NCBI GenBank assembly: GCA_977016875.1
Contig: CDRNST010000067.1
Span: 2,294,001 to 2,358,000 of the forward strand
Direction: 5' to 3'
Length of the DNA: 64,000 nucleotides
DNA from: Pavona decussata
Taxonomy: Eukaryota
In this document: in pieces, positions 1-47,354 of the stretch
How the letters are laid out: each line of letters begins with the position of its first letter
Numbering within the stretch: position 1 is the stretch's first letter
Notes under the pieces: model-generated
The model's database searches: none
What the model saw: only the letters and a program-made list of their open reading frames with translations
Told to the model about the DNA's origin: nothing
Translations under genes and position numbers: made by a program

Positions 1-864
1 TTATTTAGTAATGCTGGTATGGAAAAAAATATTTGGGTCCCCAATCATGTTAATCCAAGGTAATTTCAGCTGCCAAGTATCTAAACATGTAATCACACTT
101 TTCTGCTGAAGTTTACCTTTACGCTTACAGTCTAATGAAAAAATAGCAATAATAATGAGGTTCTGAGACTTATTGGTAAATTCTTGCTTTCGTTCCGATC
201 TTTACATCCTTTGTTCTTGGAAACCCAGCAAAGTTAAACCTCGTATACATTGACGTTCTTTTAAAAGCTCCAATAGTTTTTCGACACAATCTTCTATCAG
301 CTTACAATTGTGACGTTTCATTTATCAGTGCACATGTCCAAAACACTCCAGATTTCCCTTCACTTAAGACGAAAAAAAAACTGTTTTTAAAATATTTGGC
401 TAAAGGCATAACCTTTTCATTGAGAATTGTCCAAAATATGTGCGACACTGAAAAGATCAACATTTATTGGATATGATACTTACAATCTATCAGCCATTCA
501 CAACAAAAGAAACAAACAAAAAGCTCTTACGACGTTTAAAATTATATATGATATGTCCCACCCTATTTGAAAGACCTCTTTTCGAGTGATATCGGGACAT
601 CGGTGTATAATCTTACAACTTCAAGGTGGAATTTAGCCTTACCAGCAATTGAAACAGATTAATACCGGAAAAGAAACCTAAATTGCTGAATATTTTCGTT
701 CATTTAGTCGGCGGCAAGTTTGTTGTATCGATCTTATTGTCTGTTTCGGTTTCGTTGGCTGGTTAATTCATTGCTTGCACATTCTAAAGATTTCCATTTG
801 CTTACTTTCTCCAAACATTTGAAGTAACAAATATGGCGCCCATATTTTGTAAAGTCTTGGCTTG

Positions 865-1845
865 TTACATCCAACCTTGCCCGGTTGAAACGGATAGCCT
901 CGCATTGACAGCCTCGCGGTTCCATACCGAACACTTGTTAAAAGTAGCACCTACTCGTTGTCGAATTCCTCGATACCTCCAGCAGAGAATTAATGGGTTT
1001 ATTGAGGAATGAAGAAAAACCAAGTACCCTGCAAAATAGTTAACAGCTAAGACAATAATGTGAGAACCGTAAGTTTCTTTTACCATAAATGAGATGAGAT
1101 TTGGTAACCAACAAAGAATAAATATTATGTGCACATAGAAAGCATTGTTGGTTGATTTTTTTACCCGAGCCATGTTTGGTGTCTGGTTGTTAGACTGAAC
1201 TTGTAAATGACTTTGTATTTGATTTCTGTGACGCCGCGCAACTCTGTAAATGTAGAAATACGTTACACTTGTCGCTAAAACGCCAGAGATTTCAAGACAA
1301 ACAGCCACCATGTCATTGTATTCAGGCAGTAAAATGAAAACTGTGGCTCCAATTGCGCTAGTTGTCCATAAAAATAATAAAGTAAATAGGACGTTTTTGG
1401 GCGTTATAAGTTGGCAATATCTTAAGTGCAAAGAAACAGCCAGCAGTCGGTCGACCGCAATGGCAGCAACCGAGAAAAATGATGACAACGCAAACAAATA
1501 AAGCAGGAACCAAAACATCGTCATTGTTATAGGACACAGGAAATCAAAACGACTGGGATGCTCAGCTTGTTCGGTCTTCAGCATCACGAAGGTTACTGCG
1601 ATAAACATTTGTTGCACTAATAACCCAACAGCTAAATCAGAGACAGCGAGGTTTAGAAACAGTGCTTTCATACTTATTGTGATGGACGAGGATTTCCAAA
1701 GGGCAAATATGACGACAAGATTTCCGATGACCGTGACCAAGGAAGAGACGATATTCAACCAACAAAGAGTCGTCATGAAAGGTTCTTGGTGTAGAACAAG
1801 TTCGACTGATTCCGCAAGCTTATAGTGGCAGACTGGGGCCACCAT
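865..1845 (-). CDS. Class A (rhodopsin-like) orphan GPCR, cnidarian adenosine/melanocortin-receptor-like type, copy 1
   Basis: 326 aa, 7 hydrophobic helices, GN (TM1), LAVSD (TM2), DRL (TM3), CWLP (TM6), INPLIL (TM7). The stop has changed TGA->TGG, adding 2 aa relative to the other copies. Confidence 0.93.
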   Translation of the reverse strand: MVAPVCHYKLAESVELVLHQEPFMTTLCWLNIVSSLVTVIGNLVVIFALWKSSSITISMKALFLNLAVSDLAVGLLVQQMFIAVTFVMLKTEQAEHPSRFDFLCPITMTMFWFLLYLFALSSFFSVAAIAVDRLLAVSLHLRYCQLITPKNVLFTLLFLWTTSAIGATVFILLPEYNDMVAVCLEISGVLATSVTYFYIYRVARRHRNQIQSHLQVQSNNQTPNMARVKKSTNNAFYVHIIFILCWLPNLISFMVKETYGSHIIVLAVNYFAGYLVFLHSSINPLILCWRYRGIRQRVGATFNKCSVWNREAVNARLSVSTGQGWM

Positions 1846-3045
1846 TTTGAAGTCAGATCGAAATGGGATGTTCGCTTTTGACTGGCCTATTATGAAAGCA
1901 TAAAAACAGAAGAATAAGAGAAGATAACTACTATGAATGGGTACCAGCTGTGTCGATTTATGAAATTAATTCCTGCTTTGTACGTAATATCTGTTTACTT
2001 ATTTAAATTCAAAATTAAATATGTTTTTCAGTTACAATGAAAGCTAAGTGTCAAGACTATGTTACACTTCACGCTCTTGAAAATAAATCAAGATAGTTTA
2101 ACCATTAAGTCTGGAAGTTTTTCCATTTAAAGACAAACTGATGAAGTTGAAAAGACCTCTCTGATTTTTTACCTTCGATTTAGAAACACAGCTAGTTATT
2201 TCAAGCAATTTAAAATGGGCATTTATCGTTTTCATATTGGTTTTTCTTCTGTGGGAAATTTAATTACCGATCCGCCCCTATTACGTTATCTTTTGTTGTT
2301 ATTTCTCGTTGATAATAAAACTACGTGCTGAAAAACTATGGATTGCAAACACCAGGCTTTTCTAGAACAAACTTTGTCAAGAACAAGATAGACACTTTGT
2401 AAACTGTCTCGCCTTTAATTTATTATTCTGTGTGGGTCTTTCCGTTCGAAAAAAAATTGTTTTTGATTAAATTACAGAGGACAGCCTTCTCGAATTCTGT
2501 ATTAAAAGAAACCAGTGCGGTAAAAACAAAACTATATAACACTTCAAGATGAAATGAACACGAGTAAAATCAACTCTGAGAAATACGGATTTTAGGATGG
2601 CCAAAGAAATTTGTAGAGTTTGATATTAAAAGGCTATTTCTAACGGACACTTTTTAAAGTTCAGCGATGACAGAATCTTGAGTGACTTAAATTTCAAATA
2701 TTAGACTAAAAGCTTTTTTGGCCATATGTGACATATGTGATAGAAAACGCATTTTTGGTCAAACTTTGAGTGGTATCTTACGTCAAGTTTTGAAATCATT
2801 GAGGGTCAGACACGTACAATCGCTCTGTTGTATGCGTCGGACCCACATACTAAACGAAGGTATAACGGAAAGCTTGTAATCTTGTGCCATTAGACCTGAC
2901 TATCTCTGGGAGATCAGATCAATCCCATTAACAACTGTCGTTCATTGTTCATATCAGCAGCCACAACTGTTGATCACACCAATCTATGAATCACTAGTTC
3001 TTCTCAGCACCATTTCTTTTTGACATTTCACTGATTAAATTTCAG

Positions 3046-3219
3046 TTGATGGCAACTGGTCAACATGAGGAGCCTGGAAGAAGTGCAGTGCCACTTGCGG
3101 GGGAGGGACTCAAAAGCGTTCTCGCTCCTGTACCAATCCTTCAGCGGCCCATGGAGGAAAACCGTGTTCAGGGCCAAATGAACAGATTCAAAACTGTAAC
3201 ACGCACGTGATGTGTCCAG
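3046..3219 (+). pseudogene. TSP1 exon copy with in-frame premature stop (VDGNWST*)
   Basis: TGA at 3066-3068 where the three sister copies have TGG. Splice sites ttcag/gtatat are intact. Confidence 0.85.
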
Positions 3220-6200
3220 GTATATCATACTCTAGTGATTCTTTGGCTGCCTAAACAGGCTCTTTAGGTGTGGATGCCACAACTCAAAATCTCTCGTCAT
3301 GGAAAAGGCTATCGTAATACATTACATAAGATGGAAACCCAAAACTGAAAAGTTTTTGCTTTTGTTGTTTAATTTTAATCAGTGTTCTTTATCCGCAACA
3401 AACCTAGGACGCCTTTAACGTTATTGGTTCTCTCGGCTCAGAGGCCCGTTTCTCCAAAGTCCCGGTAACTTAACGGGCCCGATAAGTGTCTTTGGTGAAA
3501 AAAGGTTTCTTAACAGAAATGAATTTTTCGTAGCTTTGAATACTAAATTTTAGAATTTTATGATTGTACGAAATCATTGGCCAAGTACCATGTCTGTAAT
3601 CACTGTGTAATCGCCGAAAAAAAGTTTAAAATATACTTGTTGGGCCGTAGCGAGGGAGCTTGAAGCAACCGATATACGTATGGGGCCTTTCGTTCACCTT
3701 TCTTGCAAAATGCTAAGCATTGTGGTTGCGGTAAGATCAAAATGACAAGGCATTGTCGTTAATTTGTAAACACAACAATGAAACGCGCTGTTCTGCTCTG
3801 CTCTGCTCGAATGTTCGAATCGACGTATATTTTCTCCGTCTTAACTATACCCCCAATTTTTCAAAATGTTTTTACTTCGTTTATATTTTCTAAACTAAAT
3901 CGCCTTTAATTTCAGGACGCAATATATTGGCATTATGTAATCTAAATGTCTTGAAAGTTGCGTTGTTGACTTTGATTACACAGGTTGATTATTCCAATTA
4001 TTCGCGATTTCGTCTCGAATTCCACATAGTGCCATGTCTGCCTTCAGATTTTTTATTAGAGTGGTAGCTAACAAGTCGTACAACCTATCAATTTAGAAGA
4101 AACTAGAGAAGTAATCTTTAGTTGCCACGCAATTCTTGTGGCGTAACTCGAACAGTTTTGTTGATGAGTGGTTCGTTTTGTCGTTTCTGCCAGATTGCCA
4201 AGTTCCTGACTCCGATGGGCGATGACCCAGGATACGTAAAAAGTGCCAGGATTCTAACATGATCATTTTTTAGGCTTAGGCACTCAGGCTACACTCTGAT
4301 TTGAAGACTACCTTATCCGAAAAGCAAAGAATGCATAGAAGGCCTGTGTTTGTAGAAAAATGGCCTTACATCGAATGGTTCAGTTTTCAAAACTTTGGCA
4401 GACTAAATAACGGTGGCTACCGTGCCGAAATCGCTGAGACAGCGTCTTTCCAATCGTGCAATCTTCCATATCGTCTGTTATTGGAATTTTGTTTTTCATC
4501 AGGGCAAAACTACATTTCAGCTGAACTTAGACTCTTCAATATTTGAATGACATTTCAAATATCTTGCTGGATATTGACCGTTTTCAAATGACAAGCTTAA
4601 CATGACAACAGTTTTGACACGTGATATTTTATCACCTTAATTATGTGACAAAAACATCCCACACCACTTAACAAAGATTCCGTGAGGCAATCGAACGGCT
4701 TATGCATGAGCATAAATTTTCGATCCTGAAAACGAAACCTGTTTTCTCAAGTGTATTAAGACTTGACCAGCCTTATTATTATGCACATTTTTATTTGAAG
4801 TGGGAAGCATTTTTCCAATCTCTGCGAAACCTGGCAAACAGTTTAATATCGGTATCCTTATTACTTTTCCAAAATTTGTTGTATCAGATTCTAGTCACGT
4901 AAAAACGACTCATAACAGTTATGATTTTTACTGAAAAATGGGGTACAGAAAGCGACATTATTCTTATTCTCATTCTGAAGATTTCCATTTGCCTACTTTC
5001 TCTAAACATTTGAAGTAAAAAATATGGCGCCCATATTTTGTAAAGTCTTGACTTGTTACATTCAACCTTGCAATGTTGAAACAGATAGCCTCGCATTGAC
5101 AGCCTCGCGGTTCCATACCGAACACTTGTTTAAAGTAGAAATTACTCGTTGTCGAATTCCTCGAAACCTCCAGCAGAGAATTAATGGGTTTATTGAGGAA
5201 TGAAGAAAAACCATGTACCCTGTAAAATAGTTTACAGCTACGACAATAATGTGAAAACCGTAAGTTTCTTTTACCATAAATGAGATGAGATTTGGTAACC
5301 AACAAAGAATAAATATTATGTGCACATAGAAAGCATTGTTGGTTGATTTTTTAACTCGAGCCATGTTTGGTGTCTGGTTGTTAGACTGAACTTGTAAATG
5401 ACATTGTATTTGATTTCTGTGACGCCGCGCAACTCTGTAAATGTAGAAATACGCTACACTTGTCGCTAAAAGGCCAGAGAATTCAAGACAAACAGCCACC
5501 ATGTCATTGTATCCAGGCAGTAAAATGAAAACTGTGGCTCCAATTGCGCTAGTTGTCCATAAACATAATATAGTAAATACGACGTTTTTGGGCGTTATAA
5601 GTTGGCAATATCTTAAGTGCAGAGAAACAGCCAGCAGTCGGTCGACCGCAATGGCAGCAACCGACAAAAATGATGACGACGCAAACAAATAAAGCAGGAA
5701 CCAAAACATCGTCATTGTTATAGGACATAGGAAATCAAAACGACTGGGATGCCCAGCTTCTTCCGTCTTCAACATCACGAACGTTACGGCGATAAACATT
5801 TGTTGCACTAATAACCCAACAGCTAAATCAGAGACAGCGAGGTTTAGAAACAGCGCTTTCATACTTATTGTGATGGATGAGGATTTCCAAAGGGCAAATA
5901 TGACGACAAGATTTCCGATGACCGTGACCACGGAAGAGACGATATTCAACCAACAAAGAGTTGTCATGAAAGCTTCTTTGTGTAGAACAAGTTCGACTGA
6001 TTCCACAAGCTTATGGTGGCAGAGCTGGGCGACCATTTTGAAGTCAGATCGAGCTGGGATGTTCACTTTTGACTGGCCTATTATGAAAGCAAAAGAATAA
6101 GAGAAGATAACTACTCTGAATGGGTACCAGCTGACTTGGTGTATGCAATTCCTGCTTTGTACGTAATATCTGTTTACTTATTTGAATTCAAAATTAAAGC

Positions 6201-9200
6201 TGTTTTTCAATTACAGTGAAAGCCAAGTGTCAAGACTATGTTACACTTCACGCTCTTGAAAAGAAATCAAGATAGTTTAACCATAAAGTCTGAAAGTTTT
6301 TCCACTTTAAGACAAACTCATGAAGCTAAAAAGACCTTTCTGATTTTATACCTTCGATATAGAAACACAGTTACATTTATTTCAAGCAATTTAAAATGGG
6401 CATTTATCGTCTTCACATTGGCTTTTCTTCTGTGCAAAATTTAATTACCGATCCGGCCCTATTCATTATCTTTTGTTGTTACTTCTCGTTGATAATAAAA
6501 CTACGTGCTGAAAAATTATGGATTGCTAACACCAGGCACTTTTCTAAAACAAACTTTGTCAAGAACAAGATAGACACTTTGTAAACTGTCTCACCTTTAA
6601 TTTATTATTCGAATTTGCGTCGGTCTTTCCGTTCGAAAAAAAATTGTTTTTGATTAAATTACAGAGGCTGTATTAACATAACCAGTGCGGTAAAAACAAA
6701 ACTATATAACACTTCAAGATGAATTTTGAAATGAAAACGAGTAAAATCAACTCTGAGAAATACGGATTTCAGGATGGCCAAAGAAATTTGTAGAGTTTGA
6801 TATTAGAAGGCTATTTCTAACGGACACTTTTAAAAGTTCAGCGATGACAGAATCTTCAGTGACAAATTTCAAATATTAAACTAAGAGCTTTTTTGGCCAT
6901 ATGTGAGATATGTGATAGAAATCGCATTTTTGGTCAAACTTTGAGTGGTATCTTACGTCAAGCTTTGAAATCATTGAGGGTCTGACACGTATAATCGCTC
7001 TGTTGTATGCGTCGGACCCACATACTAAACGAAGGTATAACGGAAAGCTTGTAATCTTGTGACATTAGACTATCTCTGGGAGATCAGATTAATCCCATTA
7101 ACAACTGTCCCTCATTGTTCATATCAACAGCCACAACTGTTGATCACACCAATCTATTATCTACTTGCTCTACTCAGCGCCAATTTGTTCTGATAATTCA
7201 CTGATTAAATTTCAGTCGATGGTAACTGGTCAACATGGGGAGCCTGGGAGAAGTGCAGTGCCACTTGCGGGGGAGGGACTCAAAAGCGTTCTCGCTCCTG
7301 CACCAATCCGTCAGCGGCCCATGGAGGAAAACCGTGTTCAGGGCCAAATGAACAGATTCAAAACTGTAACACGCACGTGATGTGTCCAGGTATATTATAC
7401 TCTAGTGATTCTTTGGCTGCCTAAACAGGCTCTTTAGGTATGGATGCCACGACTCAAATCTGTCTTCATGGAACAGGCTATCTTAATAAATTACATAAGA
7501 TGGAAACCCAAAACTGAAAAGTTTTTGCTTTTGTTGTTTAATTTTAATCAGTGTCCTTTATCCGCAACAAACCTAGGACGCCTTTAACGTTATTGGTTCT
7601 CTCGGCTCAGAGGCCCGTTTCTCGAAAGTCCCGGTAACTTAACGGGCCTGATAAGTGTCTTTGGTGATAAATGTTTCTTAACAGAAATGAATTTTTCTTA
7701 GCTTTGAATACTAAATTTTAGAATCTTACGATTGTACGAAATCATTGGCCAAGTACCATGTCTGTAATCACTGTGTAATCGCCGAAAAAACGTTTAAAAT
7801 ATACTTGTTGGGCCCGGTAAGTTACCAGGACCGTTTCGAGAAACGGGCCCCTGGCCCAATCAAAAGACTGAGAACTGTAACATCATGGGCCGCAGCGAGG
7901 GCGCTTGAAGCGACCGATATACGTATGGGGCCTTTCGTTCACCTTTCTTGCAAAATGCTAAGCATTGTGGTTGCGGTAAGATCAAAATGACAAGGCATTG
8001 TGGTTAATTTGTGAACACTACAATGAAACGCGCTGTTCTGCTCTGCTCTGCTCGAATGTTCGAGTCGACGTATATTTTCTCTGTCTTTACTATGCCCCCA
8101 ATTTCACAGAATGTTTTTACTTCGTTTATATTTTCTAAACTAAATCGCTTTTAATTTCAGAACGCAATATATTAGCATTATGTAAGCTTAATGTCTTGAA
8201 AGTTGCGTTGTTGACTTTGATTATACAGGTTGATTATTCCAATTATTTGCGATTTCGTCTCGAATTCCACATAGTGCCATGTCTGCCTTCACATTTTTTA
8301 TTAGAGTGGTAGCTAACAAGTCGTACAACCTGTCAATTTAAAAGAAACTAGAGAAGTAATTTTTAGTTGGCACGCAATTCTTGTGGCGTAACTCGAACAG
8401 TTTTGTTGATGAGTGCAGTTCGTTTTGTCGTTTCTGCCAGATTGCCAAGTTCCTGACTCCGATGGGCGATGACCCAGGATACGTAAAAAGTGCCCGGATT
8501 CTAACATGATCATTTTTTAGGCTTAGGCACTCAGGCTACACTCTGATTTGAAGACTACCTTATCAGGCTACCGTGCTGAAATCGCTGAGACAGCGTATTT
8601 CCAATCGTGCGATCTTCCATATCGTCTGTTATTGGAATTTTGTTTTTCATCAGGGCAAAACTGCATTTCAGCTGAGCTTTAATTCTTCAATATTTGAATG
8701 ACATTTCAAATGTTTTCCTGGATATTGACCGTTTTCAAATGACAAGCTTAACATGACAACAGTTTTGACACGTGATATTTTATCACCTTAATTATGTGAC
8801 AAAAACATCCAACACCACTTAACAAAGATTCCGTGAGGCAATCGAACGGCTTATGCATGAGCATAAATTTTCGATCCTGAAAACGAAACCTGTTTTCTCA
8901 AGTGTGTTAAGACTTGACCAGCCTAATTATTATGCACATTTTTATTCGAACTGGGAGGCATTTTTCCAATCTCTGCGAAACCTGGCAAACAGTTTAATAT
9001 CGGTATCCTTATTACTTTTCCAAAATTTGTTGTATCAGATTCTAGTCACGTGAAAACGACTTATAACGGTTATGATTTTTACTGAAAAATGGGGTACAGA
9101 AAGCGACATTATATTAAACTTGTTTGTGCTTATTCGATGACCCTTTTAAAAGAATTCGTTCGCCTTTTAATGATGTCTGTAGGTCAACAGTTAATTAAGG

Positions 9201-12200
9201 AAAATAGGTTACATGAAATGACAAATAAGTACCACATTTAAAGGCGAAATTAGGTAGGCACAGTTGTAATAAACATTTCAATGTCAAACGTTTTCACCAT
9301 TTCGAGACGTCATCAACCAAGAAATGTCACGTAACACTTCGGTTTGATTAAGAAAGTCAGACAGTTTATTGAATAAATTTCCACCGATAGTGCAAATTCT
9401 TTTATCGACAGAGAATATAGTTTCCTTAAAATCTTTGCTAGGGGTCTTTTAAGGTAAATAACCTAGCCTTAAGTTACTTGAGTTTGTTGGACATTTTATT
9501 TCATTTCAGATTTTTTATTATGCGAGTTTCAACGTGCCATTTAATACACTTTGAGTTGTTATACACGTTATTTGTCCTTACTGAGTTTTCTTTCTTCACA
9601 TAGGCACAATGGGCCACTTTCAACCTTCCCTTCCTATTTTCAACGCAGTTCTGGTCTTAACAGTTCTTAACTCACCTCTCTCCCCACGGCAACATTCACT
9701 GCCGTTCCGGTATACTAGTTACTATGTTAACGTTTTTCATTGATGTATAACAGATTATTAGAATCGGGAATGTGAAAAGTAAGGCACAAGTAGTTGCTGT
9801 AACTCTTTTGAATGTTTGGCAATGAAATTAAACAATCGATTGACTTTCATTAGTCCAAGTCATTTAGTACCACCTCCATTAAACAAGCGCTGAACATTTT
9901 TCACAATTTAGTGGACGGGGGCTGGGCTACCCTCTAAGAACGAATCTGCCACTATTTTTCCATGTGTTTCACAAGCAACCTGAGGGCTAGTTTTATCTCT
10001 ATATTTTTTTGCCGGTTAATCTTCTTCCTCTTCCGCTCTTTCTTTCTCCTCTTCACCCTTTTCTTCTCATGAGCAGCAACGGTGTCTCGAGTCAAACGAC
10101 CGCTCGGATGCTGATGCAGCAATATAATGACCTGACATTTTTTATCCTGGTTTTCAAGTGTTTGAAGATGTTGAGTTAAAAAGTCAAGCTCATTACTTGC
10201 CCATATTTTGGGTATATAATTTGCTTCATACAATGAATTCTTGCATTCCTGTAATCTAAGAAATATTTGAAGCAGTATTCAAACAGTGGCTCTGTTGCAC
10301 AAGAACAAAGTGTTGCGGAATACCACTACATCAAAAAAATCACAGGATTCATTGAGAATCACTAAAATATTGGCGAGTTGTATATGGAATACATAAATGG
10401 AGGATGGCAGGAAAAGGGTCAGGTTTGTGATAGAGCAGTAAAGAAAAGTGGGTTGGACCACAATTTACAAAGGTATCAGCACCATATCCAGATCCTAAAA
10501 ATCCAGGGCATTACATGCGTGTTTTTGACACGTCAGCCCGACTAAAGATGGAAAATTGAGAGAAGTAGATAATTTTGCCCCAAGGGCAAACATCAGAAAG
10601 CTAGTGACACATACAAGTTAAAAAAACTGTCCAATGATTTGTGCGTGGAGGAAGAATATGTGGCTTTGTACGTGAAACATATGGAGGAGCTCAGAACAGT
10701 AGCCAGTATTGGAGAAAATGAGAGAAGGAAGAAACGTCAAACCGAAAGCAGCAAGAAGTATGAAGAATGTGATAGGCCTCTTTTGATCCAGTCTGGAACA
10801 CTGCAAACACTCAATGCCGGTAAACGATCCGGATATCATAAATATCTGGCAAAGCACAGCTTACCCACTGCTAGAAGAAAAGATGATAAGGTGAAGAGAA
10901 TCACAGCTGACTATTATATTCGTAACAACACCAATTCACCAATTCAGGGCTGATGTAAACCATTTGAAAATGAATAAACTTCAATTAAAATGTTAAAATG
11001 ATAAAATTTTGTTCTACTTCAATCAAATTTATATTCTTACTTTTCTATTAATTTACGAGTTGGCTCATGATAGCTTTGATCTGTAAAACTAAGCCAAACA
11101 CCTAACGGCAAACCCTCGTTTCCTGTCCATCTTCAATAGGCCTTATCACGGTTTTCGACGCCATTTTGACGAGTAGGCAAACGTTTGTATGGAAATCGGA
11201 TGTCAAATAATTCTCATAAAACATCGCTTCGGAAAAATTCATGAATTGAAAACTTTTGGCACTAGGAAAAAGATTTTAAGAAAAAAAAATCGGAGGGATG
11301 TAGCTGTGCCAGAAAGCGTCCACTCGTGTTTTGAACTTTCCATACATTTGCCTGTATTTTTTTCCCGCGAACCATTTTTAGTAGGAGTTCACGGCTGGTT
11401 CGCTATACAGACAAATGTATGGAAAGTTGAAAACACAACTGGACGCTTTCTGGCACAGCTACATCCCTCCAATTTTTTTCCTTAAAATCTTTTTCCTAGT
11501 GCCAAAAGTTTCCAATTCACGAATTTTTCCGAAGCGATGTTTTATGAGAATTATTTGACATCGGATTTCCATAGAAACACTGTTATTTCAAACGTGTTTG
11601 CCTACTCGTCAAAATGGCGTCGAAAACCGTGATAAGGCCTATTGCCAAATAACTCTGCAAGGGACTGAAAAAAGATAAACACACTTAAACATTACAATTC
11701 ATAAGACGGAAACAAAACTTTCCCATTAGGTAACAAAACAGATTTCGTGTTACAATCAATGCTTTCACCATCGTTTTTCCATTTCTTCTGTCCCTCTGTA
11801 GACCTATGTTATCGGTTTTACATGGAGTTTAGTTACTTAGTAATTGCTGGTATGGAAAAATGTTGGTAAAAATATAAAAAAGAAAAAGGAAGTGATCAAA
11901 AATTGTGGAATTTGGATCCCCAAACATGTTAATCCAAGGCAATTTCAGCTGCCAAGTATCTAAACATGTAATTACACTTTTCTGCTGCAGTTTACCTTTA
12001 CGCTTACAGTCTAATGGAAAAATACAAATAATAATGAGTTTCTGAGACTTGGAAAAAATGAGTTCCTGAGACTCGGTTCTTGGAAACCCAGCAAAGTTAA
12101 CGCTCGTATACATTGACGTTCTTTTTTAAACTCCAATAGTTTTTCAATACAATCTTCTATCAGTACAAGCTCTCTAAAGTTAGCTAGCCCTGTATTTTGC

Positions 12201-15200
12201 TAAAACAGTCTACACATAAAACCAGTTGAAATATCCAACATTGTTTCCAGCATTAGAACGGCTCAAATGGTCTTGTTTTTTATGACAATATTTTTTGTCG
12301 TAAATTGTTTACACTTGCAATGTTTCATTCATTAAGCTTATATATAAATTAACACGAAAAATATTAAACTAGTACTGGACCGCAGTGCACATGTCTAAGA
12401 ACACTCCAGATTTCTCTTTTCTTGAGACAAAAAAAACTGTTTTTAAAATATTTGGCTAAAAGCATAACCTTTTCATTGAGAAATGTCCAAAATATGTGCC
12501 CGAACAGATCGAGATTAATTTGAAATGATAGTTACAATCTATCAGCCATTCACCAACAAGAGAAACAAACAAAAGCTCTTACGATGTTTAAAATTATAAA
12601 TGATATGCCCCACCCTATTTAAAAGACCTCTTTTCGAGTGATATCGGGACATCGGTGTATAATCTTACAACTTCAAGGTGGGATTTAGCCTTAACAGCAG
12701 TTAAAAAACATTACTACCGGAAAAAACCCTAAATTGCTGAATATTTTTGTTCATTCAGTCGGCGGCAAGTTTGTTGTATCGATCTTATTGTCTGTTTCGG
12801 TTTCGTTGGCTGGTTAATTCATTCCTTGTACATTCTGAAGATTTCCATTTGCCTACTTTCCCTAAACATTTAAAGTAAAAAATATGGCGCCCATATTTTG
12901 TAAAGTCTTGACTTCTTACATTCAACCTTGCAATGTTGAAACAGATAGCCTCGCATTGACAGCCTCGCGGTTCCATACCGAACACTTGTTAAAAGTAGAA
13001 ATTACCCGTTGTCGAATTCCTCGATACCTCCAGCAGAGAATTAATGGGTTTATTGTGGAATGAAGAAAAACGATGTACCCTGCAAAATAATTAACAGCTA
13101 AGACAATAATGTGAGAACCGTAAGTTTCTTTTACCATAAATGAGATGAGACTCGGTAACCAACAAAGAATAAATATTATGTGAACATAGAAAGCATTGTT
13201 GGTTGATTTTTTTACCCGAGCCATGTTCGGTGTCTGGTTGTTAGACTGAACTTGTAAATGACTTTGTATTTGATTTCTGTGACGCCGCGCAACTCTGTAA
13301 ATGTAGAAATACGCTACACTTGTCGCTAAAAGGCCAGAGATTTCAAGACAAACAGCCACCATGTCATTGTATCCAGGCAGTAAAATGAAAACTGTGGCTC
13401 CAATTGCGCTAGTTGTCCATAAAAATAATATAATGAGTACGACGTTTTTGAGCGTTATAAGTTGGGAATATCTTAAGTGCAGAGAAACAGCCAGCAGTCG
13501 GTCGACCGCAATAGCAGCCACCGACAAAAATGATGACACCGCAAACAAATAAAGCAGGAACCAAAACATCGTCATTGTTATAGGACATAGGAAATCAAAA
13601 CGATTGGGATGCTCAGCTTGTTCCGTCTTCAACATCACGAACGTTACGGCGATAAACATTTGTTGCACTAATAACCCAACAGCTAAATCAGAGACCGCGA
13701 GGTTTAGAAACAGTGCTTTCATACTTATTGTGATGGATGAGGATTTCCAAAGGGCAAATATGACGACAAGATTTCCGATGACCGTGACCAAGGAAGAGAC
13801 GATATTCAACCAACAAAGAGTTGTCATGAAAGCTTCTTTGTGTAGAACAAGTTCGACTGATTCCGCAAGCTTATGGTGGCAGAGCTGGGCGACCATTTTG
13901 AAGTCAGATCGACCCGGCATGTTAACTCTTGACTGGCCTATTATGAAAGCAAAAGAATAAGAGAAGATAACTACTATGAATGGGTACCAGATGAGTTGGT
14001 TTATGCAATTCCCGCTTTGTACGTAATATCTGTTTACTTATTTGAATTCAAAATTAAAGCTGTTTTTCAATTACAGTGAAAGCCAAGTGTCAAGACTATG
14101 TTACACTTCACGCTCTTGAAAAGAAATCAAGATAGTTTAACCATAAAGACTGGACGTTTTTCCACTTAGAGACAAACTCATGAAGTGAGAAAGACCTCTC
14201 TGGTTTATACCTTCGATATAGAAACACAGCTATTTAAAATGGGCATTTCAGTATCGATTTCAGATTGGCTTTTCTTTTGTGCAAAATTTAATTACCGATC
14301 AGGCCCTATTCGTTATCTTTTGTTGTTACTTCTCGTTGATAATAAAACTACGTGCTGAAAAACTAGGGATTGCAAACACCAGGCTTTTCTAAAACAAACT
14401 TTGTCAAGAACAAGATAGACACTTTGTAAACTGTCTCGCCTTTAATTTATTATTCGAATTTGCGTCGGTCTTTCCGTTCGAAAAAAAATTGTTTTTGATT
14501 AAATTACAGAGGCTGTATTAACATAACCAGTGCGGTAAAAACAAAACTATATAACACTTCAAGATGAAATTGAAATGAAAACGAGTAAAATCAACTCTGA
14601 GAAATACGGATTTCAGGATGGCCAAAGAAATTTGTAGAGTTTGATATTAGAAGGCTATTTCTAACGGACACTTTTAAAAGTTCAGCGATGACAGAATCTT
14701 CAGTGACAAATTTCAAATATTAAACTAAAAGCTTTTTTGGCCATATGTGAGATATGTGATAGAAATCGCATTTTTGGTCAAACTTTGAGTGGTATCTTAC
14801 GTCAAGCTTTGAAAATCATTGAGGGTCTGACACGTATAATCGCTCTGTTGTATGCGTCGGACCCACATACTAAACGAAGGTATAACGGAAAGCTTGTAAT
14901 CTTGTGACATTAGACTATCTCTGGGAGATCAGATCAATCCCATTAACAACTGTCCCTCATTGTTCATATCAACAGCCACAACTGTTGATCACACCAATCT
15001 ATGATCTACTTGCTCTACTCAGCGCCAAATTGTTCTGATAATTCACTGATTAAATTTCAGTCGATGGTAACTGGTCAACATGGGGAGCCTGGGAGAAGTG
15101 CAGTGCCACTTGCGGGGGAGGGACTCAAAAGCGTTCTCGCTCCTGTACCAATCCTTCAGCGGCCCACGGAGGAAAACCGTGTTCAGGGCCAAATGAACAG

Positions 15201-18200
15201 ATTCAAAACTGTAACACGCACGTGATGTGTCCAGGTATATCATACTCTAGTGATTCTTTGGCTGCCTAAACAGGCACTTTAGGTGTGGATGCCACAACTC
15301 AAATCTGTCGTCATGGAACAGGCTATCGTAATACATTACATAAGATCAAAACCCAAAACTGAAAAGTTTTTGCTTTTGTTGTTTAATTTTAATCAGTGTC
15401 CTTTATCCGCAACAAACCTAGGACGCCTTTAATGTTATTGGTTCTCTCGGCTCAGAGGCCCGTTTCTCGAAAGTCCCGGTAACTGAACGAGCTCGATAAG
15501 TGTCTTTGGTGATAAATGTTTCTTAACAGGAGTGAATTTTTCTTAGCTTTGAAAACTAAATTTTAGAATTTTACGATTGTACGAAAACATTGGCCAAGTA
15601 CCATGTCTGTAATCACTGTGTAATCGCTGAAAAAACGTTTAAAATATAGTTGTTGGGCCCGGTAAGTTACCAGGACCGTTTCAAGAAACGGGCCCCTAGC
15701 CCAATCAAAAGACTGAGAACTGTAACATCATGGGCCGCAGCGAGGGAGCTTAAAGCGACCGATATACGTATGGGGCCTTTCGTTCACCTTTCTTGCAAAA
15801 TGCTAAGCATTGTGGTTGCAGTAAGATCAAAATGACAAGGCATTGTGGTTAATTTTGTGGACACTACAATGCAACGAGCTGTTCTGCTCTGCTCTGCTCG
15901 AATGTTCGAATCGACGTATATTTTCTCCGTCTTAACTATACCCCCAATTTTACAGAATGTTTTTACTTCGTTTATATTTTCTAAACTAAATCGCTTTTAA
16001 TTTCAGAACGCAGTATATTAGCATTATGTAAGCTTAATGTCTTGAAAGTTGCGCTGTTGGCTTTGATTACACAGGTTGAATATTCCAATTATTTGCGATT
16101 TCGTCTCGAATTCCACATAGTGCCATGTCTGCCTTCAGATTTTTTTATTAGAGTGGTAGCTAACAAGTCGTACAAACTGTAAATTTAGAAGAAACTAGAG
16201 AAGTAGTCTTTAGTTGCCACGCAATTCTTGTGGCGTAACTCGAACAGTTTTGTTGATGAGTGGTTCGTTTTGTCGTTTCTGCCAGATTTCCAAATAAGTT
16301 GCTGACTCCGATGGGCGATGACCCAGGATACGTAAAAAGTGCCCGGATTCTAACATGATCATTTTTTAGGCTTAGGCACTCAGGCTACACTCTGATTTGA
16401 AGACTACCTTATCCGAAAAGCAAAGAATGCATAGAAGGCCTGTGTTTGTAGAAAAATGGCCTTTCATCGAATGGTTCAGTTTTCAGAACTTTGGCAGACC
16501 AAATAACGCTGGCTACCGTGCCGAAATCGCTGAGACAGCGTATTTCCAATCGTGCAATCTTCCATATCGTCTGTTATTGGAATTTTGTTTTTCATCAGGG
16601 CAAAACTGCATTTCAGCTGAACTTAGACTCTTCAATATTTGAATGACATTTCAAATGTCTTGCTGGATATTAATCGTTTTCAAATGACAAGCTTGACATG
16701 ACAACAGTTTTGACACGTGATATTTTTTCACCTTAATTATGTGACAAAAACATCCAACACCACTTGACAAAGATTCCGTGAGGGAATCGAACGGCTTATG
16801 CATCAGCATAAATTTTCGATTCCGAAAACGAAACCTGTTTTCTCAAGTGTATTAAGACTTGACCAGCCTAATTATTATGCACATTTTTATTTGAAGTGAG
16901 AAGCATTTTTCCAATCTCTGCGAAACCTGGCGAACAGTTTAATATCGGTATCCTTATTAATTTTCCAAAATTTGTTGTATCAGATTCTAGTCACGTGAAA
17001 ACGACTTATAACGGTTATGATTTTTACTGAAAAATGGGGTACAGAACGCGACATCATATTAAACTTGTTTGTGCTTTCAAAAGACTTCGTCCGCCCTTTC
17101 ATGACCCTTTCAAAAGACTTCGTCCGCCTTTTAATGATGTCTGAAGGTCAACAGTTAATTAAGGAAAATAGGTTACGTGAAATGACAAATAAGTACCACA
17201 TTTAAAGGCGAAATTACGTAGGCACAGTTGTAATAAACCTTTTTAATGTCAAACGTTTTCACCATTTCTTGACGTCATCAACCAAGAAATATCACGTAAC
17301 ACTTCGGTTTGATTAAGAAAGTCAGACAGTTTATTGAATAAATTTCCACCGATAGTGCAAATTCTTTTATCGACAGAGAATATAGTTTCCTTAAAATCTT
17401 TGCTAGGGGTCTTTTAAGGTAAATAACCTAGCCTCAAGTTACTTGAGTTTGTTGAACATTTTATTTCATTTCATATTTTTCATTATGCGAGTTTAAACTT
17501 GCCATTTAATACACTTTGAGTTGTTATACACGTTATTTGTCCTTACTGAGTTTTCTTTCTTCACATAGGCACAATGGGCCACTTTCAACCTTCCCTTCCT
17601 ATTTTCAACGCAGTTCTGGTCTTAACAGTTCTTAACTCACCTCCCTCCGCACGGCAACATTCACTGCCGTTCCGGTATACTAGTTACTATGTTAACGTTT
17701 TTCATTGATGTATAACAGATTATTAGAATCGGGAATGTGAAAAGTAAGGCACAAGTAGTTGCTGTAACTCTTTTGAATGTTTACCAATGAAATTAAACAA
17801 TCGATTGAGTTTCATTAGTCCAAGTCATTTAGTATCACCTCTATTAAACAAGCGCTGAACATTTTTCACAATTTAGTGGACGGGGGCTGGGCTACCCTCT
17901 AAGAACGAATCTGCCACTTCTTTTCCATGTGTTTCACAAGCAACCTGAGGGCTAGTTTTATCTCTATATTTTTTTGCCGCTTGATCTTCTTCCTCTTCCG
18001 CTCTTTCTTTCTCCTCTTCACCGTTTTCTTCTCATGAGCAGCAACGGTGTCTCGAGTCAAACGACTGATCGGATGCTGATGCAGCAATATAATGACCTGA
18101 CTTTTTTTATCCTGGTTTTCAAGTGTTTGAAGATGTTGAGTTAAAAAGTCAAGCTCATTACTTGCCCATATTTTGGGTATATGATTTGCATCATACAATG

Positions 18201-21200
18201 AATTCTTGCATTCCTGTAATATAAGAAATATTTGAAGCAGTATTCAAACAGTGGCTCTGTTGCACAAGAACGAAGTGTTGCGGAATACCACTACATCAAA
18301 AAAATCACAAGATTCATTGAGAATCACTAAAATATTGGCGAGTTGTATATGGAATACATAAAGGGAGGATGGAAAATTGAGAGTGGTAGATAATTTTGCT
18401 CCAAGGGCAAACATCAGAAAGCTAGTGACACAGACAAGTTAAAAGAACTGTCCAATGATTTGCGCGCGCGTGGAGGAAGAATATGTGGCTTTGTAGGTGA
18501 AACATATGGAGGAGCTCAAAACAGTAGCCAGTATTGGAGAAAATGAGAAAAGGAAGAAACGTCAAACCGAAAGCAGCAAGAAGAATGAAGAATGTGATTG
18601 GCCTCTTTTGATCCAGTCTGGAACACTGCAAACACTCAACGTAAACGATCCGGGTAAATATCTGGCAAAGCACAGCTTACCCACTGCTAGAAGAAAAGAT
18701 GATAAGGTGAAGAGAATCACAGCTGACTATTATATTCGTAACAACACCAATTCAGTCACTCTGCATACAAGAACTGATGAGACTGACCGTGATTCTGATC
18801 AAGACAGTGAATCAGGAAATGGATCTGATGATGATGAAGTTGTCCGAATTATTCCTGAAAGTGGACACGATTCAACAGATGAAGAACAGTTTTCTGACAC
18901 TGAGATTATTGAGATGGTTACTGGATCTCGCAGAAGAGCTGCCAGATTCTCTTCACGGTTTCAGGATTTTTATCTCTATTAATTTTTAGGATATTGATCT
19001 TGAAATTAAAAAAATTGCTTTTTAGTTGAATAGTTCAGTTCAAGGTACACACATAAAGTGATCATCTGGGAGTCAATTATTAAGGTAGCCGTCATGCTAG
19101 TCAAGGCAAATATTAAGCTGCAAAGGTTGGGAGGGGGGCTATGAAATTCCAGCCACCTTGGCCATGGAGGCCTTTCTAAAATTTAATGAAAAAATGGAGG
19201 GGAGCCATAAATAATTCCAGCTAAATGATTCTGTATCTTCATAGCCCCCCTTTCCATATCAAATGAACTTTCCCTTGGCAATGAAAATTTGGTTTTATCC
19301 GCCCCTTGTTTAGGTAGGCTACAATGCGTCTTTTGATTAAAAAAGTATACATATTATGTGATTCTACAGGGCTGATGTAAACCATTTGAAAATGAATAAA
19401 CTTGAATTAAAATGATAAAATTTTGTTCTACTTAAACAAAATTTCTATTTTTACTTTTGTATTAATTTACAAGTTGGCTTATGATAGCTTTGATCTGTAA
19501 AACTAAGCCAAACACCTGACCGCAAACTCTCGTTTCCTGTCCATCTTAAATTGCCAAATAACTCTGCAAGGGACTGAAAAAAGATAAACATACTTAAACA
19601 TTAAAATTCCTAAGACGGAAACAAAACTTTCCCATTAGGTAACAAAACAGATTTCGTGTTACAATCAATGCTTTCACCATCGTTTTTCCATTTCTTCTGT
19701 CCCGCTGTAGACCTATGTTATCGGTTTTACATGAAGTTTAGTTACTTAGTTATTGCTGGTATAGAAAAATGTTGGTAAAAAAATAAAAATAAAAAGGAAG
19801 TGATCGAAAATTGTGGAATTTGGATACCCAAACCTAGGTAATTTCAGCTGCCAAGTATCTAAACATGTAATCACACTTTTCTGCTGCAGTTTACCTTTAC
19901 GCTTACACTCTAATGAAAAAATAGCAATAATAATGAGTTTCTGAGACTTGGAAAAAATGAGTTCCTGAGACTCGGTTCTTTGAAACCCAGCAAAATTAAA
20001 GCTCGTATACGTTGACGTTCTTTTTTAAACTCCATCAGTTTTTCAATACAATCTTCTATCAGTAGAAGCTCTCTTAAAGTTAGCTAGCCCTGTATTTTGC
20101 TAAAACAGTCTGCTTTTAAGACCAGTTGAAATATCATTGTTGCCAGCGTTAGAACGGCTCAAATGGTCTTGTTTTTTATGACAATATTTTTTGTCGTAAA
20201 TTGTTTACACTTGCAATGTTTCATTTTTTAAGCTTATATATAAATTAACACGAAAAATATTAGACTAGTACTGGACCGCAGTGCACATGTCTAAGAACAC
20301 TCCAGATTTCTCTTTTCTTGAGACGAAAAAAAACTGTTTTTAAAATATTTGGCTAAAAGCATAACCTTTTCATTGAGAATTGTCCAAAATATGTGCCCGA
20401 ACAGATCGAGAATAATTTGATATGATAGTTACAATCTATCAGCCATCATGATTCACCAACAAGAGAAATAAACAAAAGCTCTTACGAAGTTTAAAATTAT
20501 AAATGAGATGCCCCACCCTATTTCAAAGACCTCTTTTCGAGTAATATCAGGACATCAGTGTATAATCTTACAACTTCATGGTGGAATTTAGCCTTAACAG
20601 CAGTTTAAAAAGATTACTACCAGAAAAAAATCCTAACTTGCTGAATATTTTTGTTCATTCAGTCGGCGGCAAGTTTGTTGTTTCGATCTTATTGTCTGTT
20701 TCGGTTTCGTTAGCTGGTTAATTCATTGCTTGTACATTCTGAAGATTTTAATTTGCCTACTTTCTCTAAACATTTGAAGTAAAAAAAATGGCGCCCATAC
20801 TTTGTTAAGTCTTGGCTTGTTCCATTCAACCTTGCAATGTTGAAACAGATAGCCTCGCATTGACAGCCTCGCGGTTCCATACCGAACACTTGTTAAAAGT
20901 ACAAATTACTCGTTGTCGAATTCCTCGATACCTCCAGCAGAGAATTAATGGGTTTATTGTGGAATGAAGAAAAACGATGTACCCTGCAAAATAGTTAACA
21001 CCTAAGACAATAATGTGAGAACCGTCAGTTTCTTTTACCATAAATGAGATGAGACTTGGTAACCAACAAAGAATAAATATTATGTGCACATAGAAAGCAT
21101 TGTTGGTTGATTTTTTAACTCGAGCCATGTTCGGTGTCTCGTTGTTAGACTGAACTTGTAAATGACATTGTATTTGATTTCTGTGACGCCGCGCAACTCT

Positions 21201-24200
21201 GTAAATGTAGAAATACGCTACACTTGTCGCTAAAAGGCCAGAGATTTCAAGACAAACGGCCACCATGTCATTGTATCCTGGCAGTAAAATGAAAACTGTG
21301 GCTCCAATTGCGCTAGTTGTCCATAAAAATAATATAATAAGTACGACGTTTTTGAGCGTTATAAGTTGGGAATATCTTAAGTGCAGAGAAACAGCCAGCA
21401 GTCGGTCGACCGCAATGGCAGCAACCGACAAAAATGATGACACCGCAAACAAATAAAGCAGGAACCAAGACATAGTCATTGTTATAGGACATAGGAAATC
21501 AAAACGACTAGGATCCTCAGCTTGTTCCGTCTTCAACATCACGAAGGTTACGGCGATAAACATTTGTTGCACTAATAACCCAACAGCTAAATCAGAGACA
21601 GCGAGGTTTAGAAACAGTGCTTTCATACTTATTGTGATGGATGAGGATTTCCAAAGGGCAAATATGACGACAAGATTTCCGATGACCGTGACCAAGGAAG
21701 AGACGATATTCAACCAACAAAGAGTCGTCATGAAAGCTTCTTGGTGTAGAACAAGTTCGACTGATTCCGCGAGCTTATAGTGGCAGAGCTGGGCCACCAT
21801 TTTGAAGTCAGATCGACCTGGGATGTTCACTCTTGACTGGCCTATTATGAAAGCAGGAGAATAAGAGACGATAACTACTCTGAATGGGTACCAGCTGACT
21901 TGGTGTATGCAATTCCTGCTTTGTACGTAATATCTGTTTACTTATTTGAATTCAAAATTAAAGCTGTTTTTCAATTACAGTGAAAGCTAAGTGTCAAGAC
22001 TATATTACACTTCATGGTCTTGAAAAGAAATCAAGATAGTTTAACCATAAAGTCTGGACGTTTTTCCACTTAAAGACAAACTGATGAAGTTAAAAAGACC
22101 TCTCTGATTTATACCTTCGATATAGAAACACAGCTATTTATTTCAAGCAATTTAAAATGGGCATTCATCGTTTTCAGATTGGCTTTTCTTTTGTGCAAAA
22201 TTTAATTACCGATCCAGCCCTATTCATTATCTTTTGTTGTTACTTCTCGTTGATAATAAAACTACGTGCTGAAAAACTATGGATTGCAAACACCAGGCTC
22301 TTATGAAACAAACTTTTTCAAGAACAAGATAGACACTTTGTAAACTGTCTCGCCTTTAATTTATTATTCTAATTTGCATCGGTCTTTCCGTTCGAAAAAA
22401 AATTGTTTTTGATTAAATTACAGAGGCTGTATTAATATAACCAGTGCGGTAAAAACAAAACTATACAGCACTTCAAGATGAAAACGTGTAAAATCAACGC
22501 TGAGTAGTACGGATTTCACGATAGCCAAAGAAATTTGTAGAGTTTGATATTAGAAGGCTATTTCTAACGACACTTTTAAAGTTTAGCGATTACAGAATCT
22601 TGAGTGACTTAAATTTCAAAATATTAAAACAAGAGGTAGTTTGGCCTTTTGTGATAGGAAACGTTAAGTCAAGCCTCGGAATCATCTCTCTGTTGTATGC
22701 GTCGGACCCACATACTAAACGAAGGTATAACGGAAAGCTTGTAATCTTGTGACATTAGACTATCTCTGGGAGATCAGATCAATCCCATTAACAACTGTCC
22801 CTCATTGTTCATATCAACAGCCACAACTGTTGATCACACCAATCTATTATCTACTTGCTCTACTCAGCGCCAATTTGTTCTGATAATTCACTGATTAAAT
22901 TTCAGTCGATGGTAACTGGTCAACATGGGGAGCCTGGGAGAAGTGCAGTGCCACTTGCGGGGGAGGGACTCAAAAGCGTTCTCGCTCCTGTACCAATCCT
23001 TCAGCGGCCCACGGAGGAAAACCGTGTTCAGGGCCAAATGAACAGATTCAAAACTGTAACATGCACGTGATGTGTCCAGGTATATTGTGCTCTAGTGATT
23101 CTTTGGCTGCCTAAACAGGCTCTTTTTGCGTGGATGCTACAATTAAAAATCTGTTGTCATGGAACAGGCTATCTTAATACATTACGGAAGATGGAAACCC
23201 AAAACTGAAAAGTTTCAAAAAAAAAATAATAAATGTTTTTGTTGTTAATTTTAATCAGCCTTTAATTAATGTTGTTGGTTCTCTCTTCTGCTCCATCAAA
23301 TGACTGGTCTGTAACGAGCATTGAGTGACATCATGTGCCGCAGCAGATATCCTTAAATTCGTGTTATACTGTGTTAACGTTTTTCATTGATGTATAACAG
23401 ATTATTAGAATTGGGAATGTGAAAAATAAGGCACAAGTAGTTGCTGTAACTCCGTTGAATGTTTGGCAATGAAATTAAACAATCGATTGAGCTTCATTAG
23501 TCCAAGTCATTTAGTATCACCTCCATTAAACAAGCGCTGAACATTTTTTCACAATCTAGTGGACGGTGGCTGGACTATGTGGGGAGACTGGGGCAAATGC
23601 AGTGTAACTTGTGGTGGAGGAACTCAAACACGTTATCGCTCCTGCACCAACCCACCCGCGGCCCATGGTGGCAGACCGTGCGCTGGTCTAAATCAGGTGA
23701 CTCAGGACTGTAACAAGGAAATCTTCTGTCCAGGTAAAAAGCTAAGGATTTCAAAATGTTGAACACGAAACATACGGGCATTTGAACACCACACCTCGTG
23801 TTCTTATTTAGATGAAATTATGAATCTATGTATCAACGTCATCGTCGTTCTTATCATAATGAACGTCTTAAGAAAAAAAAACCACAATTTTTGGTTTACA
23901 AGACATCATCATTATTATTATAATCACTGAGTGTGCATCGATCATCGTCCTTCGAACTTTCACTAACAACACCAAATTCCAAAATGAGGAAAGTAACCTG
24001 GATTCCAAAGCCTTTAGTTGTAAGCGACCTCTTGAGAATCGATAATTACCACTGCCAATAGCCCGACCTAAACCCATAAATATTTTTTCCAGTGTATGGA
24101 GGCTGGACGATGTGGGGACTTTGGGGCAAATGTAGTGTAACTTGTGATGGAGGAACTCAAATACGTAATCGATCTTGCACCAACCCGCCTGTGGCCCATG

Positions 24201-40147: not shown

Positions 40148-41344
40148 GGTGGACAAATGTTTACGTGGTTACGTGTTTCCCGAAGCGAAACGAAAAAAAT
40201 TTTAGTATTAAATCGTTTAGAGTTTAAGTGAAATAATGTTTAGATTATTAACTCAAGAGACTGTTGTTGTACAGCATTAGCGGACAAAAGAATAGCTAAT
40301 ACCAATAGCGAGGAGGTTAAGAGGGTAAGGTTTTTTTTAACGTTTCAAACGTAACGTTTATAAAAATCAAGGCCGGACTTTTCGTTTTAAAATTTAACTT
40401 GGAAATTTTGGGTCACATGAAAAAAGAATATTCTCAAAATAATAAACCAAATGTCTTCCTTTAACCGATGAGTGTGTTCCACCGTTGATCAAAGAGTCTA
40501 ATCTCCTTCCTCGGTGTTACAAGTGGCAGGAGGATGATCATTGTTCCAACTGGCAGTTCTTGCAATTCACAAAACAAAAGTATTACTTTCGGGTGAAAGG
40601 AATTATTCTACCAACTATACAGTAGTGACGGGTATTGATTAATCCCTTAAAATTTTCAAGTGCTCGCAAAATGCTGCTCGACTAACTCAAAATGGTTTTC
40701 AAGGGTGCTCTTCAGGCGCTCGTAGATTTTTCGCAAGTGCTCGCCCCCATTTATTTTCGGAATCTCGTGAAAAACTGCTGACTGAAATATTTAAATTTTT
40801 GTGTAAAGTAGTGTATTTTCAGTTCAGAAAAAAACACCACTGGATGGAATTGATGTAACGTTTACTCTGTCGGTGGTAAGATGCGGATGAAAAAAATTGA
40901 GAATAAATAAAAATTCTTTAGAGCGTCAAGTTTGAGAGCTTCCGCTGACATTCAAAACTGAAAGCTAAACAGCAACTTGTTAAACTTTTAAAATGTGTCT
41001 ATTGCTTGCGGAAATTTCCTGAAGTGTTCGCTGCTCGTAAATTTATACAAATACTCCAGATCTGGGCACGTGACTCTTTAAGCAATATACAGTTACATAA
41101 GTTAAACACCAAGTTCATGTAACATTGAAAGCGTCGACGTACCTTCGATTCTGTCATTGGGTATCTATATGGATTATTGAAAACTTCTTTATGATTGCAG
41201 TGCGAATGATTTTTTTGTCGTTTAAAAACTATTCCCAAAGTAGCCAATATAAAGGTCATGTAATCTTTATAGCTCTCTTAAGTATAGTGATGGTAGTGAT
41301 GAATGGAGTCAGTTTGTTCGCTTTATGTTCACTGATACATACGA

Positions 41345-47285: not shown

Positions 47286-47354
<69 letters not shown>

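Follow-up and report, generated by a model that had tools for sequence, protein, structure and literature searches.

A stretch of 64,000 nucleotides from the scleractinian coral Pavona decussata, hereafter the window (positions 2294001-2358000 of contig CDRNST010000067.1, G000:C67, in a 602-Mb assembly), carries a tandem array in which genes for G-protein-coupled receptors (GPCRs) on the minus strand alternate with exons of a plus-strand host gene whose predicted protein is built of TSP1 repeats. All coordinates are window positions, negative ones lie in the upstream flank, and the whole window sequence contains no N. The locus is very likely a tandem segmental duplication within a secreted multi-TSP1 gene. 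The initial annotation had described the array as cassettes that each add one antisense GPCR gene and one in-frame TSP1 exon, and had proposed that every unequal crossover alters receptor number and repeat number at the same time. The description is confirmed apart from one exon copy and the unequal sizes of the units, and the proposal is supported in part.

Architecture of the array and its host gene

Comparison of the window with itself by BLAST yields head-to-tail units that are 92-96% identical and recur with a period of about 7.9 kb (n=4), that is, a tandem duplication:

326-4961: repeat unit A, short (about 4.6 kb), 92-95% identical to the other units
4971-12830: repeat unit B, 7.86 kb
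12831-20734: repeat unit C, 7.9 kb
20735-23215: repeat unit D, the last and partial unit, in which homology stops 136 bp past the exon

Unit A is without the inter-unit sequence of about 3.3 kb that units B and C have. This filler (7600-11600) is unique to the locus except for an element in unit B that resembles a miniature inverted-repeat transposable element (MITE). The receptor genes of the four units are intact open reading frames (ORFs) free of introns:

865-1845, minus strand: GPCR A, intact intronless class-A ORF of 326 residues, ATG at 1843-1845, 7tm_1 score 74.8 bits
5062-6066, minus strand: GPCR B, intact intronless ORF, conserved ATG at 6034-6036, 7tm_1 domain
12922-13920, minus strand: GPCR C, intact intronless ORF, conserved ATG at 13894-13896, 7tm_1 domain
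20826-21830, minus strand: GPCR D, intact intronless ORF, conserved ATG at 21798-21800, 7tm_1 domain

The ORFs span 326-334 codons each, and all of them pass the Pfam profile PF00001 (7tm_1) with 71.5-75.8 bits against a gathering cut-off of 30.5. The claim of four intact minus-strand receptor ORFs is thus borne out by the ORF listing and by the profile scores. The profile is covered in one stretch in GPCRs B and D (profile positions 1-259/260) and in two stretches in GPCRs A and C, the best of which covers positions 1-128. The conserved start MVAQ/MVAP and the motifs DRL, CWLP and NPLIL are found in all four receptors, with L taking the place of Y in both DRY and NPxxY. No close copy beyond these four was found in the 602-Mb assembly, in which the next paralogue is 49% identical, and the best named protein matches, from Orbicella, Oculina and Porites, carry adenosine-A2a-like or melanocortin-receptor-like labels. 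The ratio of non-synonymous to synonymous substitution rates (dN/dS) between pairs of window copies ranges from 0.16 to 0.76. Together with the intact frames, such values reflect relaxed or diversifying evolution, which is usual for young receptor duplicates.

The second component of the unit is an exon of the VDGNW type, and each such exon has one GPCR or more upstream of it:

3046-3219, plus strand: TSP1 exon copy A, splice sites intact, in-frame TGA at 3066-3068, one E-to-K change
7216-7389, plus strand: TSP1 exon copy B, intact, phase 1/1, TSP_1 score 53.8 bits
15061-15234, plus strand: TSP1 exon copy C, intact, phase 1/1, peptide the same as that of copy B
22906-23079, plus strand: TSP1 exon copy D, intact, phase 1/1, one T-to-M change

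The four array exons are each 174 bp long, begin after a tttcag acceptor, end before a gtatat donor, are in phase 1/1 and encode one TSP1 domain. With Pfam PF00090 (TSP_1), for which the gathering cut-off is 21.6, exons B, C and D reach 53.8-55.7 bits, and the three changes between exons B and C are all synonymous. In exon copy A, TGG has become TGA at 3066-3068, so that a stop replaces the second W; the orthologous copy in the related assembly with three units has no stop. Because of this in-frame stop, exon A cannot add a TSP1 repeat, and in the window haplotype it is a disabled exon or pseudo-exon. The claim of four in-frame TSP1 exons, one per cassette, therefore holds for the intact copies B, C and D and fails for copy A.

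The upstream exons of the host gene were located in the 20 kb upstream of the window by comparison with Orbicella, and the gene continues past the array:

about -6432 to -6076, plus strand: host first exon, with ATG, signal peptide, linker and TSP1-like segment
about -5140 to -4966, plus strand: host EGF-like exon
-2922 to -2752, plus strand: host TSP1 exon U, 171 bp, phase 1/1, TSP_1 score 43.2 bits
23560-23733, plus strand: first host TSP1 exon past the array, 174 bp, phase 1/1, RNA joints
24093-24266, plus strand: host TSP1 exon, 174 bp, phase 1/1, RNA joints
24752-24925, plus strand: host TSP1 exon, 174 bp, phase 1/1, RNA joint
25679-25852, plus strand: host TSP1 exon, 174 bp, phase 1/1, RNA joint
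26559-26732, plus strand: host TSP1 exon, 174 bp, phase 1/1
27151-27324, plus strand: host TSP1 exon, 174 bp, phase 1/1
about 27746-27907 (boundaries approximate), plus strand: shorter host TSP1-like exon, phase 1/1, conserved with Orbicella
29799-30022 (start approximate), plus strand: host terminal coding exon, Gly-rich linker and last TSP1, stop at 30020-30022

The linker in the first exon is basic and Pro-rich with a poly-Asp/His part, and the same C-terminal exon is present in Orbicella and other corals. As judged from its exons, the host gene would encode a secreted protein with TSP1 repeats nearly throughout, the array being placed between exon U and the remaining gene. Since the receptor ORFs lie on the minus strand, the host on the plus strand, and the receptors between exons that are joined in RNA (U to VDGNW), the GPCRs are nested genes.

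Unit number in related coral genomes

Seven coral genomes, the window included, were compared, and their unit counts are 1, 1, 1, 1, 2, 3 and 4. In Orbicella faveolata (MZGG01000205.1), a single orthologous GPCR, 67% identical, lies antisense within an 850-residue NCBI gene model with many TSP_1 matches, the order being exon U, GPCR, VDGNW-type exon and further TSP1 exons. The same single-copy order is found in three other coral assemblies (L011, L014 and L015). By this comparison, the ancestral state is one intronless antisense GPCR in the intron between exon U and the VDGNW exon. Among the genomes examined, arrays are confined to close relatives of the window. The two units of one relative (L010 and L013) share a contig at a distance of 11.4 kb and have a reverse-transcriptase insertion, and those of another, which has three units (L012 and L001), lie on one contig with a spacing of about 8.0 kb. 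In both relatives every unit has an intact exon, and GPCR and exon are always present together.

A maximum-likelihood tree of the units (2572 columns, Orbicella as outgroup) pairs window unit A with unit 1 of the three-unit genome (support 100/100), unit B with unit 2 (100/99) and unit D with unit 3 (88/95), so that window unit C has no positional counterpart there. Unit 3 of the three-unit genome is itself a mosaic. To the left of about 22467 in the coordinates of unit D, 56 of its sites are C-like and 17 D-like, and it differs by 1.9% from C and by 4.1% from D; to the right, 11 sites are C-like and 38 D-like, and the distances are 5.1% from D and 8.7% from C (Fisher p=3e-9, with a breakpoint picked post hoc). 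A C/D mosaic of this kind appears to be the product to be expected of unequal crossing-over between units C and D, in which case exon C and GPCR D would have been lost together. The opposite event, a duplication in the window lineage instead of a deletion in the three-unit genome, is disfavoured, because GPCR C differs by 1.0% from the GPCR of the mosaic unit and by 3.4% from GPCR D.

The two units of the two-unit genome are monophyletic (support 99/98). However, this genome has the same junction between post-exon sequence and filler as the window (L010 reverse strand 15759-16264 against window 7478-7984, 91.7%), so the first duplication predates the split from that genome. An independent duplication there is disfavoured by the common junction, and one old duplication followed by concerted evolution fits better. 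As a separate observation, the GPCR paralogues of this relative (10001-10996 of each locus, L010 and L013) differ by 24 non-synonymous and 5 synonymous changes, giving a dN/dS of 1.45; diversifying selection after duplication is a possible cause.

It is extremely unlikely that the array is an assembly artefact produced by merged haplotypes or by a collapsed or expanded repeat. The units differ from one another by 4-8% and in addition by the 3.3-kb indel and the MITE insertion, units A, B and D have positional orthologues in another assembly at about 98% identity, and the two-unit genome carries the same junction. Moreover, four DNA-type runs contain 64-71% of the words sampled from 20700-26700. 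The warning that long reads might expose merged haplotypes is thus not borne out by the divergence of the units and the recurrence of the copies in the assembly that is about 98% identical.

The proposed link between the two copy numbers is well supported by the fact that both parts lie in the unit, by the series of unit counts across genomes and by the C/D recombinant. The numbers of GPCRs and exons are linked because both components belong to the repeat unit. With the exon placed 1.1 kb upstream of the receptor's start codon on the other strand, any duplicate keeping 1.1 kb of receptor 5' flank carries the exon along. The linkage is nothing special in itself and follows from physical proximity. 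In the scheme that these comparisons suggest, a segment that starts downstream of the GPCR and ends 136 bp beyond the VDGNW exon would have been duplicated in the window lineage, and the number of units would later have shifted by unequal homologous recombination and gene conversion. Each such event would add or remove one receptor gene and one symmetric exon together.

The number of TSP1 exons in the host gene differs between corals. In L015, two downstream host TSP1 exons (about 6045 and about 6537, minus strand) are degenerate, with stops and lost cysteines, so birth and death of TSP1 exons are ongoing in the host gene.

Transcripts of the host gene and possible use of the array exons

RNA was checked over positions 20700-26700 in four runs, all in the form of assembled short-read contigs. 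Because GT..AG joints are present, runs X1-X3 are RNA. In these three runs, the GPCR D ORF and the exons are covered and most introns are uncovered. Contigs of GPCR D extend from 20700 to about 21905 in X1 and X2, and 21906-22709 is uncovered in X1-X3. GT..AG joints connect 23079 with 23560, that is, a D-like exon with the first downstream exon (X2, X3), 23733 with 24093 (X2, X3), and 24925 with 25679 (X1-X3); a further joint, which links the exons at 24093 and 24752 (about 24263 to 24749), is without canonical ends (X2, X3). Another run, X7, is certified RNA and contains a GPCR contig that is nearest to the two-unit lineage (20-21 of 30 variant letters). This represents expression of the orthologue in a relative and not in the present genome. 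The peptide of exon B found nine matches among transcript-derived peptides, the best one being 67% identical and none belonging to this species, a blank made uninformative by the length window.

The upstream connection of the host transcript is seen at a loose contig end before 22903 in X1 and X3, where a 30-nt consensus corresponds exactly to -2784..-2755, the end of exon U, and is followed by CAG. Exon U is therefore joined to a VDGNW exon, so the host transcript begins upstream of the array and crosses it. A host transcript starting between 21.9 and 22.9 kb, which the initial annotation had named as fatal to its reading, is thus excluded by contigs from two runs. The U-joined contig of X1 has 3 mismatches to exon D over 106 nt, against 0-1 per 100-200 nt in other X1 contigs. 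The mismatches to D expected for such a contig are 0 for copies C and D, 2 for B and 4 for A, so the U-joined exon is probably a copy other than these first two. In X3, by comparison, a D-like exon is joined to 23560. Spliced RNA thus seems to contain two or more of the array exons, not necessarily in one molecule.

The array exons are also conserved as sequences. All cysteines are kept in 10 of 10 exon copies and the splice sites in every copy, and the nine copies other than A, from three genomes, have an open frame with identical acceptor and donor. Variable sites among B, C and D amount to 4 of 174 in the exon versus 91 of 1124 in the non-coding flanks (p=0.004), and among the nine copies of three genomes to 16 of 174 versus 224 of 996 (p=2.5e-5). 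This pattern points to constraint on the exon copies, which argues for their use.

A somewhat unlikely alternative is that the additional exons are silent passengers, the host mRNA using one VDGNW exon (D or any one), so that receptor number changes and the number of TSP1 repeats stays constant. The stop that has already killed exon A agrees with this explanation, as do the lack of any joint between two VDGNW exons in the four runs and the degenerate exons with stops in L015, which indicate that exon death is common. However, the nine copies in three genomes keep their splice sites, open frames and all cysteines, variability in the exons is 3-4 times lower than in the flanks, and the U-joined contig matches neither D nor C.

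It is also conceivable, with a still lower probability, that the array exons are used as alternatives, either mutually exclusive or as cassettes, which would yield isoform diversity rather than a longer protein. Tandemly duplicated exons often become mutually exclusive. The 5a/5b exon pair of SCN genes is an instance (PMC12772994). At position 23012, the X2 RNA contains two exon variants, with a depth of 24.5 for C versus 8.5 for T, so at least two exon sequence variants are present; however, these could be alleles. Since exons B and C encode the same peptide and D differs by one residue, there would be almost nothing to diversify, and the phase-1/1 frame is kept without exclusivity.

In the favoured scheme of linked gain and loss, the host transcript starts upstream, runs across the array and is spliced from U to an array exon and from a D-like exon to the downstream exons, the two connections that are visible in RNA. 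The GPCRs are transcribed as discrete units, as seen in RNA cover that carries no strand. If B, C and D are all spliced in, the protein would gain up to three extra TSP1 repeats that are identical or nearly so, with exon A as a decaying passenger. The exons at 7216 and 15061 may enter the host mRNA, as their conservation would suggest; no exon-to-exon joint is seen for them.

Several observations weigh against this scheme. The back-joint expected between two VDGNW exons, which would go back by 174 nt, is absent from the contigs of the four runs, whereas a joint of this kind is present for another exon of the host gene; this is weak evidence because short-read contigs collapse or break at near-identical repeats. 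Exon A offers the first acceptor after U and has a stop, so its constitutive inclusion would truncate the protein. Gene conversion could explain part of the higher conservation of the exons. In its right part, the mosaic unit differs from D by 5%, versus about 2% in other orthologous pairs, so its history is more complex than one clean crossover. Finally, two of the contigs from relatives encode identical proteins and possibly come from the same specimen, in which case they are not independent.

Some further features of the host transcripts lie downstream of the array. In X1, one contig joins the end of exon 24093-24266 back to its own start, going back by 174 nt with a side of 86 nt, and a 2-nt insertion follows 24113 in that contig. 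Another individual or allele may thus carry a tandem duplicate of this exon that is expressed. In addition, contigs of X1-X3 cover nearly all of intron 25852-26559 (25725-26587), which may reflect intron retention, an alternative 3' end or a further transcript. An ORF at 25612-26091 reads from exon 25679-25852 into this covered intron.

Comparison with known systems

The components of the locus are ordinary, namely nested antisense GPCRs, tandem growth of coral GPCRs, and gain and loss of symmetric TSP1 exons. Among vertebrates, MED12L holds a whole tandem P2Y-like cluster. Human GPCRs nested on the opposite strand include P2RY12 and P2RY13 in MED12L, GPR82 in CASK and CXCR6 in FYCO1 (PMC3933685). 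Like the receptors of the coral locus, vertebrate nested GPCRs are intronless class-A genes placed antisense in an intron of an unrelated host, and tandem duplicates are possible. However, the vertebrate duplicates lie within one intron and have no host exon in the unit, whereas the coral unit carries a coding exon of the host. Noel et al. found the GPCR to be the most abundant domain in coral-amplified, largely tandem orthogroups (34 of 192; bioRxiv 10.1101/2022.05.17.492263). Those receptors belong to the same rhodopsin-like superfamily and the same animal clade as those of the present locus and likewise expand by tandem duplication; nesting, thrombospondin, TSP1 and co-amplified host exons, which the coral locus has, are not mentioned in that study (10.1101/2022.05.17.492263).

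On the side of the host gene, the locus resembles the duplication of symmetric exons, as one exon corresponds to one TSP1 domain in phase 1/1 and its gain or loss causes no frameshift. For extracellular proteins, the shuffling and duplication of symmetric module exons of class 1-1 were reportedly described by Patthy, and tandem exon duplication is said to have been surveyed by Kondrashov and Koonin and by Letunic et al. The coral segment of about 8 kb, however, contains a complete independent gene and is more than an exon with short flanking intron. LRRTM genes, which are nested in alpha-catenin genes, have multiplied along with their hosts (PMC3933685). As in the coral locus, a nested gene and host sequence were copied as one block and their copy numbers are linked; however, whole hosts were copied there by genome or large-scale duplication, whereas a single host exon is copied in the coral by local tandem duplication. 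A full-text literature search turned up no description of a nested gene amplified along with an exon of its host, which is not proof of absence.

The conserved arrangement raises the question of whether receptor and TSP1 module form a functional pair, co-regulated through the shared 1.1-kb region or interacting with each other, and co-amplified by selection. The order of U, antisense GPCR and VDGNW exon is kept in seven of seven coral genomes, down to 67% GPCR identity, and GPCR and host exons occur in the same RNA runs. TSR proteins have been implicated in the uptake of symbionts by cnidarians (PMC5446238), and the expansions of coral GPCRs are suspected of a part in host-symbiont signalling (10.1101/2022.05.17.492263). 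However, conservation of nesting by inertia is expected, and in one cassette the exon is dead beside an intact receptor, so exon and receptor are not jointly maintained. A functional pair is very improbable on these grounds. The same low probability applies to a putative bidirectional control region or antisense interference that would couple expression of the receptor with inclusion of the matching TSP1 repeat or with its level, and to a role of the repeat in the ligand system. If a functional cassette were nevertheless true, selection would amplify a receptor and an extracellular module as a matched pair, in a context of symbiosis or immunity. In the scheme of linked gain and loss, by contrast, the linkage would reflect hitchhiking and not a functional partnership, and hitchhiking would be tolerated since the number of phase-1/1 TSP1 exons is free to vary.

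The locus by itself reveals no new mechanism. It offers a clean and datable case in which a single recombination event may alter both receptor-gene dosage and the number of domains in an unrelated secreted protein, with the ancestral single copy and the two-, three- and four-unit states all available in related corals. Selection on the nested gene can drag the number of host exons along, or the reverse. The locus also bears on the growth of the very large GPCR repertoires of corals, a second nested GPCR pair being present in the same window. For annotation, automated gene prediction will probably yield wrong models of the host gene as well as of the receptors at this locus.

Other elements of the window

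The dispersed element in the filler is as follows:

11134-11644: palindromic MITE-like dispersed repeat of about 470-510 bp, in unit B only and not in unit C, with more than 40 genomic copies

Its genomic copies are 83-93% identical and occur on both strands, and it has an inverted match to itself. The idea that a transposon forms the inter-unit filler or brought about the duplication was considered and rejected, as the filler is otherwise unique and an origin mediated by transposable elements is unsupported. The inter-unit region of unit C also contains a plus-strand ORF (18497-18982) of 161 residues, acidic and Ser-rich, which has no Pfam match and is partly common to unit B.

The second pair of 7tm_1 ORFs, of 329 residues, is located at 39167-40156 and 48837-49826 on the minus strand, in a direct repeat that is 94.7% identical (39167-41085 and 48837-50761). 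This pair is more distant from GPCRs A-D and is absent among their genome matches at E<=1e-60. Between the two copies, 44000-48000 has a G+C content of 0.46-0.50 with strong GC and AT skew and contains ORFs at 44828-45520 and 45560-46183. The latter ORF scores 27.8 bits with RVT_1, below the cut-off of 29.6, and the stretch 44000-48000 is probably a retroelement fragment.

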